From Podarcis melisellensis (Eukaryota): a stretch of DNA of 64,000 nucleotides. Position numbers and translations under genes: made by a program. Below the pieces are notes generated by a model. That model was not told the origin of the DNA and made no database searches. It saw only the letters and a list, made by a program, of their open reading frames with translations. The DNA is taken from assembly GCA_964234715.1 (NCBI GenBank), contig OZ174279.1. One strand, 5' to 3'. Of the stretch, positions 16,134 through 52,383 are shown one piece after another (within the stretch, counting starts at the first letter, position 1; the number at the start of each line of letters is the position of its first letter).

Positions 16134-17729
<1,596 letters not shown>

Positions 17730-44499: not shown

Positions 44500-44785
44500 T
44501 ATTCAACACAAGATTATTGTTGATCATTGAGGTTCATATTTAAATATCTGCTTAAAGCTTCAGTCCTAATTACATAAGTCGGACTTCCTTCTGAACTAAC
44601 GTGCATAGAATTTACGCTATCTATCTGTGGTCTGATATACTAGCCCTCCCCAACTTGGTGTCCCCCAAATGTTTTGGAAAACAGCTCCCATTATCTATGA
44701 CCACTGGGCATGCTGACCACTGTGTTTTAGGCAAATGCAACAGAATATTTGCAGGTCTATTATGTATTTATTTTGCTATGCCCAT

Positions 44786-45193
44786 TGTCAGGGAACTGCC
44801 ATCTAAAGCGCCGGGGGCGCAAAGGCTCACTGAGGTTGAGAGAGGAGTAGCAGCGGAAGAGGGAACCAGTAGAGGGCGAGCAAGAACTCCAAGGGAAAGT
44901 GAGTCGGAGGGATGGCTCAGAGACGCTTCCAGCGAAAACAGTGGGGAGGTCTCAGGACCTCCTATAGGGACACCCACACCTCGCCGGAAACTGTCACGCG
45001 GAGAGGCCAGACGACGTGTTTCCGTTAAAGAGCTTTTATGTTGGAAACGATTCCGAAAGCAGCCACTTTCGGATTCTACTAGTGATTGACGCAGCCATGC
45101 TGGAGGGGCTCCGTCACAGGCAGAGGTTTGAAAACCTGATCAAACTCTGAGGGACTTGCATTTTACGCACAAGCAGCTCATCGTCCCATCACA
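44786..45193 (+). repeat. Gypsy 5' LTR
   Basis: TGTCAGGGAACT...CCCATCACA, direct repeat of 49876-50283. Confidence 0.96.
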
Positions 45194-45195
45194 GC

Positions 45196-45206
45196 AATCC
45201 GAAAGT
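45196..45206 (+). promoter_or_regulatory. Self-priming primer binding site
   Basis: AATCCGAAAGT is the exact reverse complement of ACTTTCGGATT at 45065-45075 within the LTR; no TGG-type tRNA PBS after the LTR. Confidence 0.8.
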
Positions 45207-45239
45207 CACCGAAAGCCAGCTTGTGCAGGGAGAAGCATC

Positions 45240-46259
45240 ATGAGCAACCCAGCCGGAACCGGAGGAGCAGGAGCAGCTGGAGGGGGTCCAAGCCTGGAAG
45301 AAAGGTACAGGGCGTTGGAGATCCAGTTGGCGCTGCAAACGGCGAGGCTTGAGGAGAGGAGGGCTCAGGATGCAGAAAAGGGAAAGGAGAAAACCACCCC
45401 GCTCGCCAGAAAGGTGCCAGGATTGGTGCAGAAATTCGGGGGGGATCCCAGGAACTATCATGCCTTTAGAACAGAGATGCAATACGCTCTAAACTTGCAG
45501 TTTGATGACTTCCCCGACGAGGAATCGCGAGTGGCTTTTGTGATTGGCCATCTCGAATCCGGGGCGAAGGATTGGGTTAGACCCCTGATGGCAGCGAATA
45601 ATGAGATCCTAAAGGACACGAGGAAGTTTTTTCGTGCCATGGACCTGATGTTTTCCAGCGATATTGAGCAGGGGGTGGTGCGAAGGCAGTTAATGGCTTG
45701 CCAGCAAGGAAGCAGATCTGTCCGTGAGTACTGGACTGAGTTTACTATGCTGATTCATAAATTGGGGTGGGACCTATCGGCGGAGCCCATCCAAATGCTT
45801 TTCGAAGAGGGGCTTTCTTCAACCGTCAAAGATGAGCTTTCCCGGGGGCCCAGGGCGGAGTCTATGGATCAGTTAACCAAATCTGCGCTGTGCATAGGAG
45901 CGCGCCAGGAGGCGAGGGCTTTGGAAAAGCGGGAAGGGAAAGGAGACCGTTGGAGGGAGTTCCGCATTCCAGACATTCCAGAGCCACCTTTCCCGCCGGC
46001 AGAGCCGATGGAAGTTGGAACAGCGCGGGCGCGCGCAGTTTCAAATCCCAGTGACGGGCGGAAGAAGGAGGGAAGGAGCGCCAAGAGATGTTATCTCTGC
46101 CAACAGCCAGGGCACTTTGCCAGAGTCTGCCCACAAAGAAAGGAATGGCAAGGGATGGCAGGAGCTGTTGGGGGAAAGGAAGAGGAAGGCAAGGAGCAAG
46201 TAAAAGCCAACGCCTGGCTGCCACCGTCGGGGCACAGCAGCCAGGCCAAAGAGCAGTGA
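45240..46259 (+). CDS. Gypsy Gag (339 aa from first ATG after the PBS), capsid-like domain plus CCHC zinc knuckle
   Basis: ORF-track frame 45156-46259, first ATG at 45240; KFGGDPRNYHAF, QGSRSVREY, FEEGLS and CYLCQQPGHFARVC motifs. Confidence 0.9.
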   Translation: MSNPAGTGGAGAAGGGPSLEERYRALEIQLALQTARLEERRAQDAEKGKEKTTPLARKVPGLVQKFGGDPRNYHAFRTEMQYALNLQFDDFPDEESRVAFVIGHLESGAKDWVRPLMAANNEILKDTRKFFRAMDLMFSSDIEQGVVRRQLMACQQGSRSVREYWTEFTMLIHKLGWDLSAEPIQMLFEEGLSSTVKDELSRGPRAESMDQLTKSALCIGARQEARALEKREGKGDRWREFRIPDIPEPPFPPAEPMEVGTARARAVSNPSDGRKKEGRSAKRCYLCQQPGHFARVCPQRKEWQGMAGAVGGKEEEGKEQVKANAWLPPSGHSSQAKEQ

Positions 46260-49200
46260 AAGTGCCCATGCCGGAACCTCCCAGACCCGCTTTAGTGATA
46301 GAGGTGTTACTAGAACTGCCAAACGGACACCCACTAAAGATCAAGGCGCTTTTGGATTCAGGCAGCTCCTGTAATTTCATGAGTAAGGAGTTTGCAGCTG
46401 AGCACCAGATACAGACCATCCCTTTAAGTAACCCCTTGCAGGTGACTACGATTGACGGCAGAGAGCTGTTGGGGGGAGAAGTTAGCCAACAGACTGTCCC
46501 GATGATAATGAGGGTGGCAAGGCACACCGAACAGATAGCGTTTAATGTGGCCATCCTGGGAGGAGCGCCCATCATTTTGGGGATGAGCTGGCTGGCGCTA
46601 CACGATCCGCTAGTGGGCTGGCATCAGAGGGTGGTCTCCTTTGGGTCAGCGCATTGCCTAGAACACTGCAAGGAGGGGAAGGTTTCGGGAGGAGACAGAG
46701 TCACCCTAGCCGGGATGGAAGTAATGGACAAAGGGAAGGTGCCCCCGCAATACGCAGATCTGAGCAACGTATTCAGCGAAAGGGAAGCAGACAAACTGCC
46801 ACCGCATAGACCCTTTGACTGTCAAATCAACCTACTCCCTGGGGCCCAACTCCCAGTAGGCAAGCTGTACGCCATGTCAGACAGGGAGATGCAGGAGCTG
46901 AGGGAGTTCATTGACAAAAACCTGAAGCGAGGTTTCATCAGAGAGTCCCGAGCGGTGGGGGGCAGCCCAGTGTTTTTTGTGGACAAAAAGAACACAGACA
47001 AACCGAGACTGGTGTGTGACTTTAGGGCCCTCAATGCAGTGTCGGAGCCCCTGGCTTTCCCTATGCCCCGAATTGATGACATTTTGACCAGAGTAAGGAA
47101 GGGAAAGATTTTTACAAAGCTGGACCTGCGGGGGGCGTACAATCTGATACGCATAAGGAAGGGAGATGAATGGAAGACCACCATGTTTACCCCTTTGGGA
47201 GCCTTTGAATACCTCGTTATGCCCTTCGGTCTACAAGGGGGCTCCGCGTGTTTTCAAGCTTTTATAAACCACGTTCTGGGACCTTTGCTCTACAAGAATT
47301 GTGTGGCCTTTTTAGACGACGTGTTGGTGTATTCGGAAGATGAGGAACAGCATGTGAGGGACGTTCGAGAAGTGTTGGGCAGGCTGCAAGCCAACCAGCT
47401 GTGGGTGAAACTGGAGAAGTGCCAGTTTCATACCAAGGAGGTGGAATTCCTGGGGTACCGCTTGTCAGACAAGGGATTGGCCATGGATCCAGGCAAGGTC
47501 CAAGCGGTACTGGAATGGAAGACACCGAAGACCAAGAAGGACGTGCAAAGATTCTTGGGGTTTGGGAACTTTTATCGGAAGTTCATCAAGAACTTTGCCC
47601 ACTTGACGGCGCCCATCACCGACTGCCTCAGCAGCAAGAAGAAATTTGTTTGGACGGTAGAGGCGGATCGAGCCTTTGAAGAACTGAAAAGGGCTTTCGC
47701 CTCGGAAGAACAACTTCTGCATGTGGATTTACGAAAACCCATGAGAGTGGAAACCGATGCATCCGACCGGGCGGTAGGGGCGGTCCTTCTTCAACCGGGG
47801 AGGAGTGCGTCGGAGTGGAGACCGTGTGCCTTCTTCTCGCGGAAGCTGAATAAATCCGAGAGGAATTACACGGTGTATGACAGGGAACTACTTGCCATTC
47901 ACGAAGCATTCCGGAGGTGGAGACATTTATTAATTGGGGCACAACACAAGGTGCAAGTGTGCACCGACCGCAAGAATTTAGAGTATTGGAGAACAGCTCG
48001 AGTGCTCAACCAACGACAAGTGAGATGGGCACAGGAATTCTCCAAATTCAACTTTGAAATTTGTTATGTGCCAGGCCCAGAAAACGTCAGGGCGGACACG
48101 CTCTCACGCAAACCAGAGTATTGGGAAGGGGAGGGGGTGATCGAAGAGAGACATGTCATCCCTGAGGACCGCTGGGTGTGTGGGGCGGCGCTGGTGGGGC
48201 AACGAGAACTGGTAGAGGAAACGGAAAATGATGAATATGCCCAGGATAAGCTCAGAGGTCTCAGGGGGGAGGGCGAGAGCCCCGGAGGTTTTGAGGAAAG
48301 AAATGGGGCATTGTATTACAAAGGGGCACTGTATATACCCGAAGGTGAATTGAGGGGGAGAGTACTCAAGCAGTTGCATGATAGCCCCACGGCGGGACAT
48401 TTTGGACAACACAAGACCATGTGGTTGGTTACCAGGGAATTTTGGTGGCCCAAGGTGAGGGAAGATGTAAGGGAGTATGTAAGAGGGTGTGACCAATGTC
48501 AGCGAGCCAAAGGGGAAAGAAGGGCGCCGGCAGGGTTATTAGAACCATTACCCACACCAGAACGGCCTTGGGAAGCGATATCAATAGATTTTATGACGGA
48601 TCTGCCAAAGTCCAAGGGGAAAACAGCCATCATGGTAGTAGTAGACCTGTTAACTAAGATGTGCCACTTTGTAGCATGCTCACATGCAGTCACAGCGGAA
48701 GAAACAGCGAAGTTGTTTGTAGAACACATCTTTAGGTTGCACGGGGCTCCCTTGAGGGTGATCTCAGATCGCGGCAAACAATTTACTTCCAGGTTCTGGA
48801 GGAAGCTCATGAGCTTGCTGCACGTGGAAGTCAATTTTTCAACTGCCCGGCACCCTGAAACCAACGGGCAGGCGGAAAGAGCAAATGGCATTCTTCAACA
48901 ATATCTGAGGTGTTATGTCAATGACAGAGAGAACGATTGGGTCGAAAAGTTGGCGTTGGCAGAATTTGCCTACAATAATGCGGAGAATGTGTCCACAGGG
49001 ATGAGTCCCTTTTTGGCTAATTACGGGTGTCACCCCAGGGCATTTCCAGGGGAAGGAGGGGAGAGATGGAGCGTCCCAGCGGCTGAACATTTTGTAGAAG
49101 AGATGGAAGCGATCCATCATCAGCTCCAGCTCAACTTAGAAAGGGCTAAGGCACAATATAAGAAGCAGGCAGACAAGAACAGAAGGGAAGGTGAAACCAT

Positions 49201-50179
49201 AAGGGTGGGGGATCAAGTGTGGTTGTCAACCCAAGGGTTGCCGTTCAAAGGGGGTTGTAAGAAATTGAGGCCCAGAAGATTGGGACCCTTTGAGGTCATT
49301 CAGCAGGTCAACCCGGTAGCTTTCAAACTCCGATTACCCAACCACATGAAATTGCACCCAGTGTTCCACAGGTCGTTACTGTCACCATACAGGGGGGGAC
49401 GTGAAGGGGAGTACGTCAGGGGACCAGCCTTGGAAGAGAGGGAACGCCGCAACCATGTAGCGGAAATCCTCGATTCCAGGTGGAAGGGAAATCAGGTGGA
49501 GTATTTGGTGGCGTGGGAAGGGGAACCGGAGTCAGAAAACACCTGGGTGAATGCAGAGGAAGTCAATGACGAGGTTTTAACAGAAACGTTCCACCAAAGG
49601 TTCCCGAGGAAACCTCAGCCGATAGCAAGGTTTAGGAGGGAGTATTTCGGCACCACCGATGAGGAAGAGGAAATGGAAGGGTTCGCGGAGTCGGAGTTGG
49701 AAGAGGGAGTGGACTCCGATGACGAAGATTACCGAGAGAGTAGGAACAGCAACAAGTGGAGGGAAGTGTTCGCGACGTCGGAAGACGAAGGAGGTTCTTT
49801 CAGGGGTTTTACCTCCTCACCGCCAGTAGGGGAGGAGACGGGAGGGGGTGAAGGGGGCCCTGGAGGGGAGGTGGATGTCAGGGAACTGCCATCTAAAGCG
49901 CCGGGGGCGCAAAGGCTCACTGAGGTTGAGAGAGGAGTAGCAGCGGAAGAGGGAACCAGTAGAGGGCGAGCAAGAACTCCAAGGGAAAGTGAGTCGGAGG
50001 GATGGCTCAGAGACGCTTCCAGCGAAAACAGTGGGGAGGTCTCAGGACCTCCTATAGGGACACCCACACCTCGCCGGAAACTGTCACGCCGAGAGGCCAG
50101 ACGACGTGTTTCCGTTAAAGAGCTTTTATGTTGGAAACGATTCCGAAAGCAGCCACTTTCGGATTCTACTAGTGATTGA
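46088..50179 (+). CDS. Gypsy Pol (expected to be expressed by -1 frameshift from gag): protease, RT, RNase H, integrase, chromodomain, acidic tail, LTR-encoded extension
   Basis: ALLDSGS (PR); KLDLRGAY, MPFGL, FLDD (RT); ETDASD, YDRELLA (RH); HDSPTAGH..CDQC and IDF/SDRG/QAER with D(35)E spacing (IN); LGPF; EYLVAWEG..NTW (chromo). No internal stops. Confidence 0.95.
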   Translation: MLSLPTARALCQSLPTKKGMARDGRSCWGKGRGRQGASKSQRLAATVGAQQPGQRAVKVPMPEPPRPALVIEVLLELPNGHPLKIKALLDSGSSCNFMSKEFAAEHQIQTIPLSNPLQVTTIDGRELLGGEVSQQTVPMIMRVARHTEQIAFNVAILGGAPIILGMSWLALHDPLVGWHQRVVSFGSAHCLEHCKEGKVSGGDRVTLAGMEVMDKGKVPPQYADLSNVFSEREADKLPPHRPFDCQINLLPGAQLPVGKLYAMSDREMQELREFIDKNLKRGFIRESRAVGGSPVFFVDKKNTDKPRLVCDFRALNAVSEPLAFPMPRIDDILTRVRKGKIFTKLDLRGAYNLIRIRKGDEWKTTMFTPLGAFEYLVMPFGLQGGSACFQAFINHVLGPLLYKNCVAFLDDVLVYSEDEEQHVRDVREVLGRLQANQLWVKLEKCQFHTKEVEFLGYRLSDKGLAMDPGKVQAVLEWKTPKTKKDVQRFLGFGNFYRKFIKNFAHLTAPITDCLSSKKKFVWTVEADRAFEELKRAFASEEQLLHVDLRKPMRVETDASDRAVGAVLLQPGRSASEWRPCAFFSRKLNKSERNYTVYDRELLAIHEAFRRWRHLLIGAQHKVQVCTDRKNLEYWRTARVLNQRQVRWAQEFSKFNFEICYVPGPENVRADTLSRKPEYWEGEGVIEERHVIPEDRWVCGAALVGQRELVEETENDEYAQDKLRGLRGEGESPGGFEERNGALYYKGALYIPEGELRGRVLKQLHDSPTAGHFGQHKTMWLVTREFWWPKVREDVREYVRGCDQCQRAKGERRAPAGLLEPLPTPERPWEAISIDFMTDLPKSKGKTAIMVVVDLLTKMCHFVACSHAVTAEETAKLFVEHIFRLHGAPLRVISDRGKQFTSRFWRKLMSLLHVEVNFSTARHPETNGQAERANGILQQYLRCYVNDRENDWVEKLALAEFAYNNAENVSTGMSPFLANYGCHPRAFPGEGGERWSVPAAEHFVEEMEAIHHQLQLNLERAKAQYKKQADKNRREGETIRVGDQVWLSTQGLPFKGGCKKLRPRRLGPFEVIQQVNPVAFKLRLPNHMKLHPVFHRSLLSPYRGGREGEYVRGPALEERERRNHVAEILDSRWKGNQVEYLVAWEGEPESENTWVNAEEVNDEVLTETFHQRFPRKPQPIARFRREYFGTTDEEEEMEGFAESELEEGVDSDDEDYRESRNSNKWREVFATSEDEGGSFRGFTSSPPVGEETGGGEGGPGGEVDVRELPSKAPGAQRLTEVERGVAAEEGTSRGRARTPRESESEGWLRDASSENSGEVSGPPIGTPTPRRKLSRREARRRVSVKELLCWKRFRKQPLSDSTSD
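46212..46267 (+). promoter_or_regulatory. Predicted H-type RNA pseudoknot stimulating gag-pol -1 frameshift
   Basis: Stem 1 GCCTGGCTGC (46212-46221)/GCAGCCAGGC (46237-46246); stem 2 GGGCAC (46230-46235)/GTGCCC (46262-46267); located at the gag/pol overlap. Confidence 0.75.
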
Positions 50180-50283
50180 CGCAGCCATGCTGGAGGGGCT
50201 CCGTCACAGGCAGAGGTTTGAAAACCTGATCAAACTCTGAGGGACTTGCATTTTACGCACAAGCAGCTCATCGTCCCATCACA
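49876..50283 (+). repeat. Gypsy 3' LTR (first 304 nt encode the Pol C-terminus)
   Basis: Direct repeat of the 5' LTR, preceded by purine-rich GGAGGGGAGGTGGA; pol stop at 50177-50179. Confidence 0.96.
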
Positions 50284-52383
50284 CCCATCTTACTTGCATT
50301 TCCAGTCAGTGTCAAAGTTACAGAAAACACATATCGTTACACTGGTGTTCTGAGAAGGAACACTGTAAAGTACAAAAAAAAAAAGATTTTCAATACTTGT
50401 GGCAGAGAAAAATGTGACCAACAAACCAATTTTAGAGTTTAGCTACACTTGGTAAATTTGGAAGCCTTGTAAATCTAGAGTAAGTGGGGATAGCATTGGG
50501 CTCACTAATTTGCAAACAAGACTAGAGTGGCTCCAGGGATTTCTTTGAATGGGACTAAAATAAGTGGCTTTCCTAGTCATTAAGTTTACAAGCCTTTGCA
50601 AATCAATAGACCAGTTTGTTACGAAACAAATGACTGTCTTTAAAAAGCAAAAAGCGGGGATTTCACCACAGTGATCCAGGCAGTAACTAAGGTAACTAGG
50701 AAGTATTAAATCAGCATATTTAATTTCAGACTTTAAGGTTAGAGACATTGGGCTCTGGTAATAAGCCAAATCAGAGGAAAAATAATAGAATCACAGTGGA
50801 TAGACTCTAGAAATATTTCTTCTCCAGTTCCATGCCATATTTGTTTCCTCGCACTTAAGCCTGTCTTATCTATACCCACAAGGAGAGAATAGCACTTAAC
50901 AGGTTACCCCATGCAAACTATGTTGGCTAGATTATGGAAAGGAATAAATATTAGTAATAGGAAATGGGTAAGTGTGTAACTGTTGATCAGCTGGACTTTT
51001 GATACAGTTTAACTGGTGGAAATTCCATATAAAGCTAGTTGGACAAATGTGGGAATGTTTTATGAGTTATCCAGGAACCCAAAATGATCACGCAAGGGAT
51101 TTAAAAATCAATTACCTTCCACAACTCTAGCATTCAAATAAGCCATTTTTCATCAAGTCAAACCTTAATATATACTAGAAAAGTCATTAGTACACCATTG
51201 TTCATTCTTCAAGATCACTTCTATCATATGCCCAGATGTATTTGGAGCATATGCTCCAATATTGATTGCAAATTCAATTTAAGGCAAATCTCTTCCGTCA
51301 AGGTTTCAGTTGACAATATCGTTCTCAGTATTTTCTGTCCCTGCTTTTATGCTGTTGCTGATGTTAGTAATATATTGTTTTTCAAATTATTTTGGGCTTT
51401 TGGGTTGCAGTGTAAACCAATGAAAGCATCAGAAAAGCAGCATATAAGCATTTTATTAAAGTACCACTCAGTATACAGTTACCTCTGAGAAACACCTTGG
51501 ACAGTCTGAACACACTTCCAGGTTTCCTTAGCTTATCGACTATAATGAGAGGCAAAAAGTCCCCTTGGTATTGTAACTGTGGCATGTTGAATATCTCTTT
51601 AATGAGCCTGTAATGGAACATTTCATTTCCCCCTCTGATACTTGCCTGGTGTGATTTAGTCCCACTGGGCATGGCTCAACTTCATTTTATTTTTGGGTCA
51701 GGCATGTTGGGACCGAGTAGAAGGCTTTGCTTAGCTGCCATATAGATTTCTATGTATTATTCTGAAAAAAAAGAAAGTTGCCTTTGAACCTGCCTGTCTC
51801 TGCTGAGTGTTCACATGAGAGTAGAATCTTTCACAACATGGACTCCTGAGTGAATAGTGCACCCCTGGTACCAGGGTGAGCAGATGCAGATCAAGACAGG
51901 GCTCCTTCATCTTTAATAAGTTGTCTTCCCATGTTATGCTGAACACAGGTACAAACTGTCTCCATCCATGTTTGTGTGAAAGAGTGCACACTTGTGGATT
52001 AATCTAGCTCAGCTACAGTGTACACAGGTACAAAACTCTACACTCATTGAACATTAGATATGTACAACTCAACTATTGTGTACATATACACTGCATGCTT
52101 GTTGAATGTAATGTGTGAATGCCCCTGGAGTTGTATAGAAGAGGGAATTTCAGAAGGTGCAGCTTGCATAATGAGCTATACTTGATGGAATTCTATCTTT
52201 TCAAACCAACTGCTAAAGGTGTAGCAACCCTGTCCTCTTTTTCATCTGGTCACCTTACCTGGATCTTGGAGGCAAATAATAAATATATGGTATCAGAAGG
52301 CCTGTCTTCTATTTTGGTCTCCAGCACACCAAACAGAACTGATGCCTAAGATAAAGCCAATTTGGATCAAATTTATAGGCTAC

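Follow-up and report, generated by a model that had tools for sequence, protein, structure and literature searches.

Tandem acidic xGF motifs in the integrase tail of a lizard chromovirus resemble host peptides that dock on LEDGF/HRP2-type domains

The window, by which we mean the whole 64,000-nucleotide stretch of DNA analysed, contains no N and carries one complete Ty3/gypsy chromovirus on its plus strand, the only copy that blastn found there. The element and its flanks comprise the following features.

44781..44785 (left) and 50284-50288 (right): 5-bp target-site duplication CCCAT, read directly
44786..45193, plus strand: 5' LTR, 408 nt, TG...CA (offset comparison and blastn, ends read)
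45156..46259, plus strand: gag ORF with Retrotrans_gag / Ty3 capsid and CCHC knuckle (ORF and domain search)
46088..50179, plus strand: pol ORF, 1363 amino acids, intact and stop-free (ORF, translation and domain search)
49457..49600, plus strand: chromodomain, Pol aa 1124-1171 (Pfam match; HP1 alignment, 1KNA/6ASZ)
49631..49684, plus strand: motif 1, made up of the anchor FRREYF, the 8-residue linker GTTDEEEE and MEGF
49685..49756, plus strand: acidic inter-motif spacer of 24 residues, differing between relatives in both sequence and length
49757..49810, plus strand: motif 2, made up of the anchor WREVF, the 9-residue linker ATSEDEGGS and FRGF
49829..49875, plus strand: purine-rich polypurine tract, also translated within Pol, directly 5' of the 3' LTR
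49876..50283, plus strand: 3' LTR, 408 nt, TG...CA (offset comparison and blastn, ends read)

Pol contains, in order, protease, reverse transcriptase, RNase H, integrase (H2C2 zinc, core and SH3 domains), a chromodomain and a tail. This is the domain order of a chromovirus, found here together with LTRs and a target-site duplication, and phylogeny nests the element within the chromoviruses. The two LTRs are identical at 407 of 408 positions, with a single mismatch (blastn), and the element is a young, intact chromovirus of a Podarcis-like lizard. Its closest database proteins are all Podarcis muralis annotations, and a search of public assemblies for the exact Pol sequence recorded no match. 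Contig word depths reach 10^5 across 49400-50284, where 1406 contigs were aligned in one comparison; at least one other organism contains the element family or its LTR in very high numbers. The pol ORF lies in the -1 frame relative to gag and overlaps it by 172 nt. A slippery heptamer within the overlap (G GGA AAG in the gag frame, 46172-46178) is a candidate -1 frameshift site, and the PEG10-type GGGAAAC site is absent from the overlap. At its 3' end the pol ORF runs across the polypurine tract and then through 304 nt of the 3' LTR (U3), which supply the last 101 residues of Pol and its stop codon.

Approximately 27 kb from the element, on the minus strand, lies an ORF of 527 amino acids of the LRRTM family (16134-17717), which matches LRRTM2 structures with an E value of 2.5e-119. 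LRRTM genes nest in catenin introns, so a catenin-intron site is plausible, and plausible only. The original prediction had taken a position in a presumed giant intron as fitting integration into genes; the intron itself is thus credible, but a single insertion proves nothing about targeting.

The same prediction had singled out two strings just past the chromodomain, each with a helix-like segment, an acidic linker containing serine or threonine and an (F/M)xGF ending. Translation of the pol ORF bears this out: motif 1, FRREYFGTTDEEEEMEGF, spans Pol aa 1182-1199 (49631-49684, plus strand) and begins 11 residues past the Pfam chromodomain (aa 1124-1171), and motif 2, WREVFATSEDEGGSFRGF, follows after 24 residues at aa 1224-1241 (49757-49810, plus strand), both lying 5' of the polypurine tract. 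In either motif, two serines or threonines with an acidic residue at +3 sit right behind the anchor phenylalanine (T1189 and T1190 in motif 1, T1230 and S1231 in motif 2), forming CK2-type S/T-x-x-D/E sites, and this pair is conserved in the alignment of relatives. The two endings differ in one respect that the prediction had folded into a single formula: motif 2 ends in FRGF, whereas the ending of motif 1 is MEGF rather than FxGF in this copy. The corresponding residues are LEGF in the sibling copies P0001 and P0003 and F[VE]GF in P0004, P0156 and P0008.

The proposed class of these motifs comprises the peptides that bind TFIIS N-terminal-type domains (TND-interacting motifs, TIMs) and the integrase-binding domain (IBD-binding motifs, IBMs). 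MLL1 combines an F-x-x-V-F anchor with a following FLGF; a search of papers for printed MLL1 motif strings found none. A TIM is defined by a short, obligate helix that bears an F/V/L/I anchor, by an acidic linker, 8-16 residues long and rich in D/E/G/S/T, which is phosphorylated by CK2, and by FxGF, which is optional across TNDs and is carried and needed by every known LEDGF/HRP2 partner (PMC9987994). In DPF3a, the peptide LFGSTSESDTSTFHGF binds HRP2, and replacing either phenylalanine abolishes binding, whereas phosphorylation raises affinity (PMC7337902). The mode in which FxGF binds a LEDGF domain is also found in Drosophila (PMC6877644). The parts of the element's motifs stand in the same order as those of the DPF3a peptide. 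Both linkers (8 and 9 residues, with CK2-type sites) fall within the published definition, which confirms the predicted layout. Motif 2 displays every sequence-level TIM/IBM feature, and it alone in this copy has an FxGF core with both phenylalanines, invariant wherever motif 2 is carried. Like the cellular motifs, the two lie in a region predicted to be disordered, with pLDDT below 50 for Pol aa 1188-1328.

We derived a search pattern from the published TIM/IBM definition, with an F/L/I/V anchor, a linker of 8-16 residues of which at least 75% are D/E/S/T/G and at least three are D/E, and then [FLM]xGF. Across the whole 1363-residue Pol it matched twice, at motifs 1 and 2 alone. When the acidic, Phe-rich tail of 91 residues was shuffled 200,000 times with its composition preserved, at least one strict FxGF motif arose in 0.7% of shuffles and at least two loose motifs in 0.006% (6 per 100,000). 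Among 153 database proteins, [FLMIVWY]xGF behind an acidic linker was confined to the tails of six relatives, with no occurrence elsewhere in these proteins.

To define the distribution of the motifs, a query made of SH3, chromodomain and tail was scanned with HMMER against 1.84 billion representatives, which gave 9968 matches. Among the best 150 of these, 113 had readable tails, and few contained an acidic-linker FxGF; about 105 other chromovirus tails are without the motif. FxGF-tail members in the scan include P0004 (a Logan contig), P0005 (an ENA contig) and P0008 (a P. muralis fragment). P0019, P0154 and P0155 make up a second P. muralis family with the tail YFDDWLF-TPTLSAST-FQGF, and P0156 was found outside the HMMER scan, by a separate tail-restricted homology search. 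Three tail-restricted searches returned P. muralis entries and the queries only. In a tree of the SH3-chromodomain region, the ten FxGF-tail proteins and one fragment that is not FxGF-tailed (P0018) form one clade on a long stem with an SH-aLRT of 100, in a database sample drawn, apart from two contigs, almost entirely from the annotation of one species. The tails of two other squamate chromoviruses, P0027 and P0056, are acidic and have no FxGF.

In alignments of the window copy with P0001-P0005 and P0156, the anchor W/F and F, together with the G and F of xGF, are invariant, and every clade member with motif 2 has the same W, F, F, G and F in it. Between the motifs the spacer is unalignable, with an 8-residue deletion in P0003 and insertions in P0004 and P0005. 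Conservation of the motifs against variable flanks, which the original prediction had made its first check, is therefore found, and it spans saturated synonymous divergence: pS between the window and the relatives with DNA (L001 and L002) is 0.57-0.88. As synonymous sites are saturated, retention of the motifs is not due to recency, and for the same reason dN/dS is uninterpretable. Variation was also sampled in contigs from four other organisms, using the best-supported differences across 49438-50173. Of these differences, 26 are synonymous and 13 are replacements; the motifs themselves contain four synonymous differences and one replacement, which falls on the variable residue after the anchor phenylalanine. 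Between the two FxGF motifs, the more distant relatives have a third small motif, an acidic tryptophan motif (SDWE / PDWSEEE; P0004 aa ~305-315, P0156 aa ~462-470 and P0005 aa ~455-465), which is absent from the window copy.

These data bear on a further alternative, that the motifs are neutral and arose without function when part of an acidic, low-complexity tail was duplicated internally in this lineage. In its favour, the paralogy of the two motifs is clear, the composition of the tail is biased, P0005 keeps a single motif and the second motif of P0155 is degenerate. Neutrality does not account for key residues that stay invariant across saturated synonymous divergence while their neighbours are unalignable, for within-motif differences that are mostly synonymous, or for a shuffle probability of 6e-5, and we consider it very improbable.

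We also looked for a link to known IBMs by homology. A phmmer comparison of the tail with PDB chains gave chance matches only (MHC and glycerophosphate oxidase), a profile of 11 motif instances matched nothing in the PDB at E values up to 10, and an ESM Atlas feature search with the tail gave no usable match. The DPF3a peptide scored no better against the motif profile than its own shuffles; given the composition correction and the short length of the peptide, this score is uninformative and lends no support. What ties the motifs to known IBMs is therefore their pattern and context, and not homology. Pattern without homology is expected of convergent mimicry and equally of coincidence.

Coincidence of this kind would follow if the acidic and aromatic segments worked inside the element, in pairing with the basic U3-encoded C-terminus or the chromodomain groove, in integrase multimerisation, in nuclear import or in nucleic-acid mimicry. 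In an AF2 model built from a 7-row alignment, which is weak overall (mean pLDDT 49), the chromodomain is moderately confident and the tail falls below 50 over model residues 62-202 (Pol aa 1188-1328). The model draws aa 1182-1186, at the start of motif 1, as a strand adjoining the chromodomain and not as a helix, and a second strand at aa 1346-1354, the conserved LLCWKRFRK; these two segments have the best pLDDT of the tail (58-66), in what is a weak prediction. P0004 conserves the U3-encoded Pol C-terminus (LLCWKRF...PLSDSTSD), as does P0005 in a form shortened to LLCWKR. At 50020-50173, 11 of 12 differences in other organisms' contigs are synonymous, and on this comparison the basic C-terminus is under purifying selection. 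The two strands, the conserved C-terminus and the profile test, with its lack of a sequence-level link to known IBMs, all favour such an internal role. On the other hand, the model is of low confidence, and an internal role leaves unexplained why the anchor, the length and charge of the linker, the CK2-type sites and FxGF should be the conserved features, and should be so twice. We regard it as unlikely. The same low-confidence model places a short helix at aa 1221-1228, exactly on the anchor of motif 2.

We favour the reading that the motifs are functional docking motifs of the TND/IBD type with LEDGF/HRP2-type domains as their putative partner, and put its probability at roughly 45%. The layout, its low probability under shuffling, the disordered tail, the position at the integrase C-terminus, the conservation, the restriction to one clade and the degenerate chromodomain cage described below all speak for host mimicry as originally proposed; the giant-intron context, one insertion, adds nothing to it. 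The choice of partner has evidence against it as well: the first phenylalanine of motif 1 is M here and L in the siblings, and either phenylalanine is essential in DPF3a (PMC7337902). The motifs might instead be real host-docking motifs for another partner, such as the TND of IWS1, TFIIS, Elongin A, MED26 or PPP1R10, or an unrelated reader of acidic/aromatic peptides, in which case targeting would proceed through the elongation machinery or another pathway and not through H3K36me readers. The helix and acidic linker are shared across the TIM class and selectivity between TNDs is subtle (PMC9987994), motif 1 of this copy has no canonical FxGF, and the acidic squamate tails mentioned above do without FxGF altogether. 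However, FxGF is specific for recognition by LEDGF/HRP2, all of whose known partners have it (PMC9987994), and here no part of the motifs is conserved more strictly. We consider a different partner unlikely.

The chromodomain itself provides a further clue. The HP1 aromatic cage consists of Y24, W45 and Y48, and in the alignment to 1KNA the corresponding residues of the element are N, W and E, so that one of the three aromatics is left. The third cage aromatic is missing in every FxGF-tail protein, and the first is also missing in most; the clade has either xWE or NRT at these positions, whereas in about 135 relatives W and a Y or F remain. Among the other chromovirus matches compared, the third aromatic is missing only in P0018 and two short fragments. 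Loss of the cage and gain of the motifs fall on one clade and therefore represent a single evolutionary event and not a replicated correlation. A degenerate cage is in keeping with an altered mode of chromatin reading by the element, and methyl-lysine reading appears to have been lost from the chromodomain of this clade.

If LEDGF/HRP2-type domains are the partner, each motif would dock, in the manner of a cellular client, on the TFIIS-N-terminal-type domain (IBD) of the H3K36me2/3 readers LEDGF/p75 or HRP2. The W/F-x-x-x-F anchor would enter the first hydrophobic pocket, the acidic linker would lie against a basic patch, and FxGF would fill the second pocket; CK2-type phosphorylation of the two serines or threonines behind the anchor would probably strengthen the contact. 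Docking of this kind could tie the integration complex to the bodies of transcribed genes, and the motif tether may have replaced the methyl-lysine reading that the chromodomain seems to have lost. In its fullest form, this account holds that a lizard chromovirus clade swapped methyl-lysine reading for tandem, phospho-tunable mimics of LEDGF/HRP2 clients, which would be the first non-lentiviral tethering through the LEDGF family, would use the client interface and would be a convergent route to gene bodies. We offer that fuller account tentatively, as a possibility that goes beyond docking as such.

Known tethers between integrases and chromatin readers are those of lentiviruses (LEDGF, through a folded interface), gammaretroviruses (BET, through a tail peptide) and yeast Ty elements. 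The C-terminal tail peptide of MLV integrase reportedly binds the ET domain of BET proteins, a domain that also binds cellular peptides. The element resembles MLV in the tail location of its motifs and differs from it in partner domain (TND rather than ET), motif chemistry and target chromatin (gene bodies rather than promoters/enhancers). With lentiviral integrases the element would share both the proposed partner, LEDGF/p75, and the outcome, direction by an H3K36me reader to transcribed gene bodies (PMC9987994). HIV-1 integrase, however, meets the IBD through the folded dimer interface of its catalytic core, whereas the element, of a Metaviridae-like family, would use a disordered linear motif and the interface of cellular clients. 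The cellular motifs (MLL1/KMT2A, JPO2, PogZ, IWS1, ASK, MED1 and DPF3a, and Drosophila JIL-1-JASPer) have the same order of parts and the same dimensions as those of the element, and they too lie in disordered regions, sometimes in tandem (PMC9987994; PMC7337902; PMC6877644). Here, by contrast, the motifs are carried by a retrotransposon integrase instead of a host factor of transcription or chromatin, binding is putative, and the first phenylalanine of motif 1 is replaced by M. Given that homology is undetectable, the motifs, if functional, would be a case of convergent mimicry. Chromoviruses of the MAGGY and Tf1 type share the architecture of the element, with a chromodomain at the integrase C-terminus; compared with chromoviruses that read methyl-lysine, it lacks two of the three cage residues and has an additional motif-bearing tail after the chromodomain.

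We found no description of a LEDGF-type docking motif on a retrotransposon integrase in the open-access literature, in agreement with the novelty that the original prediction had suggested. De novo insertions of Drosophila LTR elements favour H3K36me3 gene bodies, and a LEDGF-like tether for these elements was proposed in the same study as a speculation, stated without supporting data (PMC10018349). If the docking model is true, the LEDGF-like tethers suspected for LTR retrotransposons become directly testable (PMC10018349). The element would also provide a natural switch from chromodomain to linear motif within one lineage, and a convergent case in which a motif of ~18 residues shows how easily integration targeting is rewired. 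It would likewise extend the ligand repertoire of TNDs to mobile elements and supply a compact natural peptide with which to study what steers the integration machinery to transcribed chromatin.

The C-terminal tail of integrase is the site of known retroelement tethers, including MLV IN-BET, Ty1 and Ty5. In our comparison, a different, basic and AT-hook-like tail (GRPRRR...(R)GGGSVT...SPEY) is common to many of the proteins P0013-P0148, and the relatives outside the clade that carry it are apparently fish. The presence of a distinct conserved basic tail in other chromoviruses suggests that tails generally house targeting modules.
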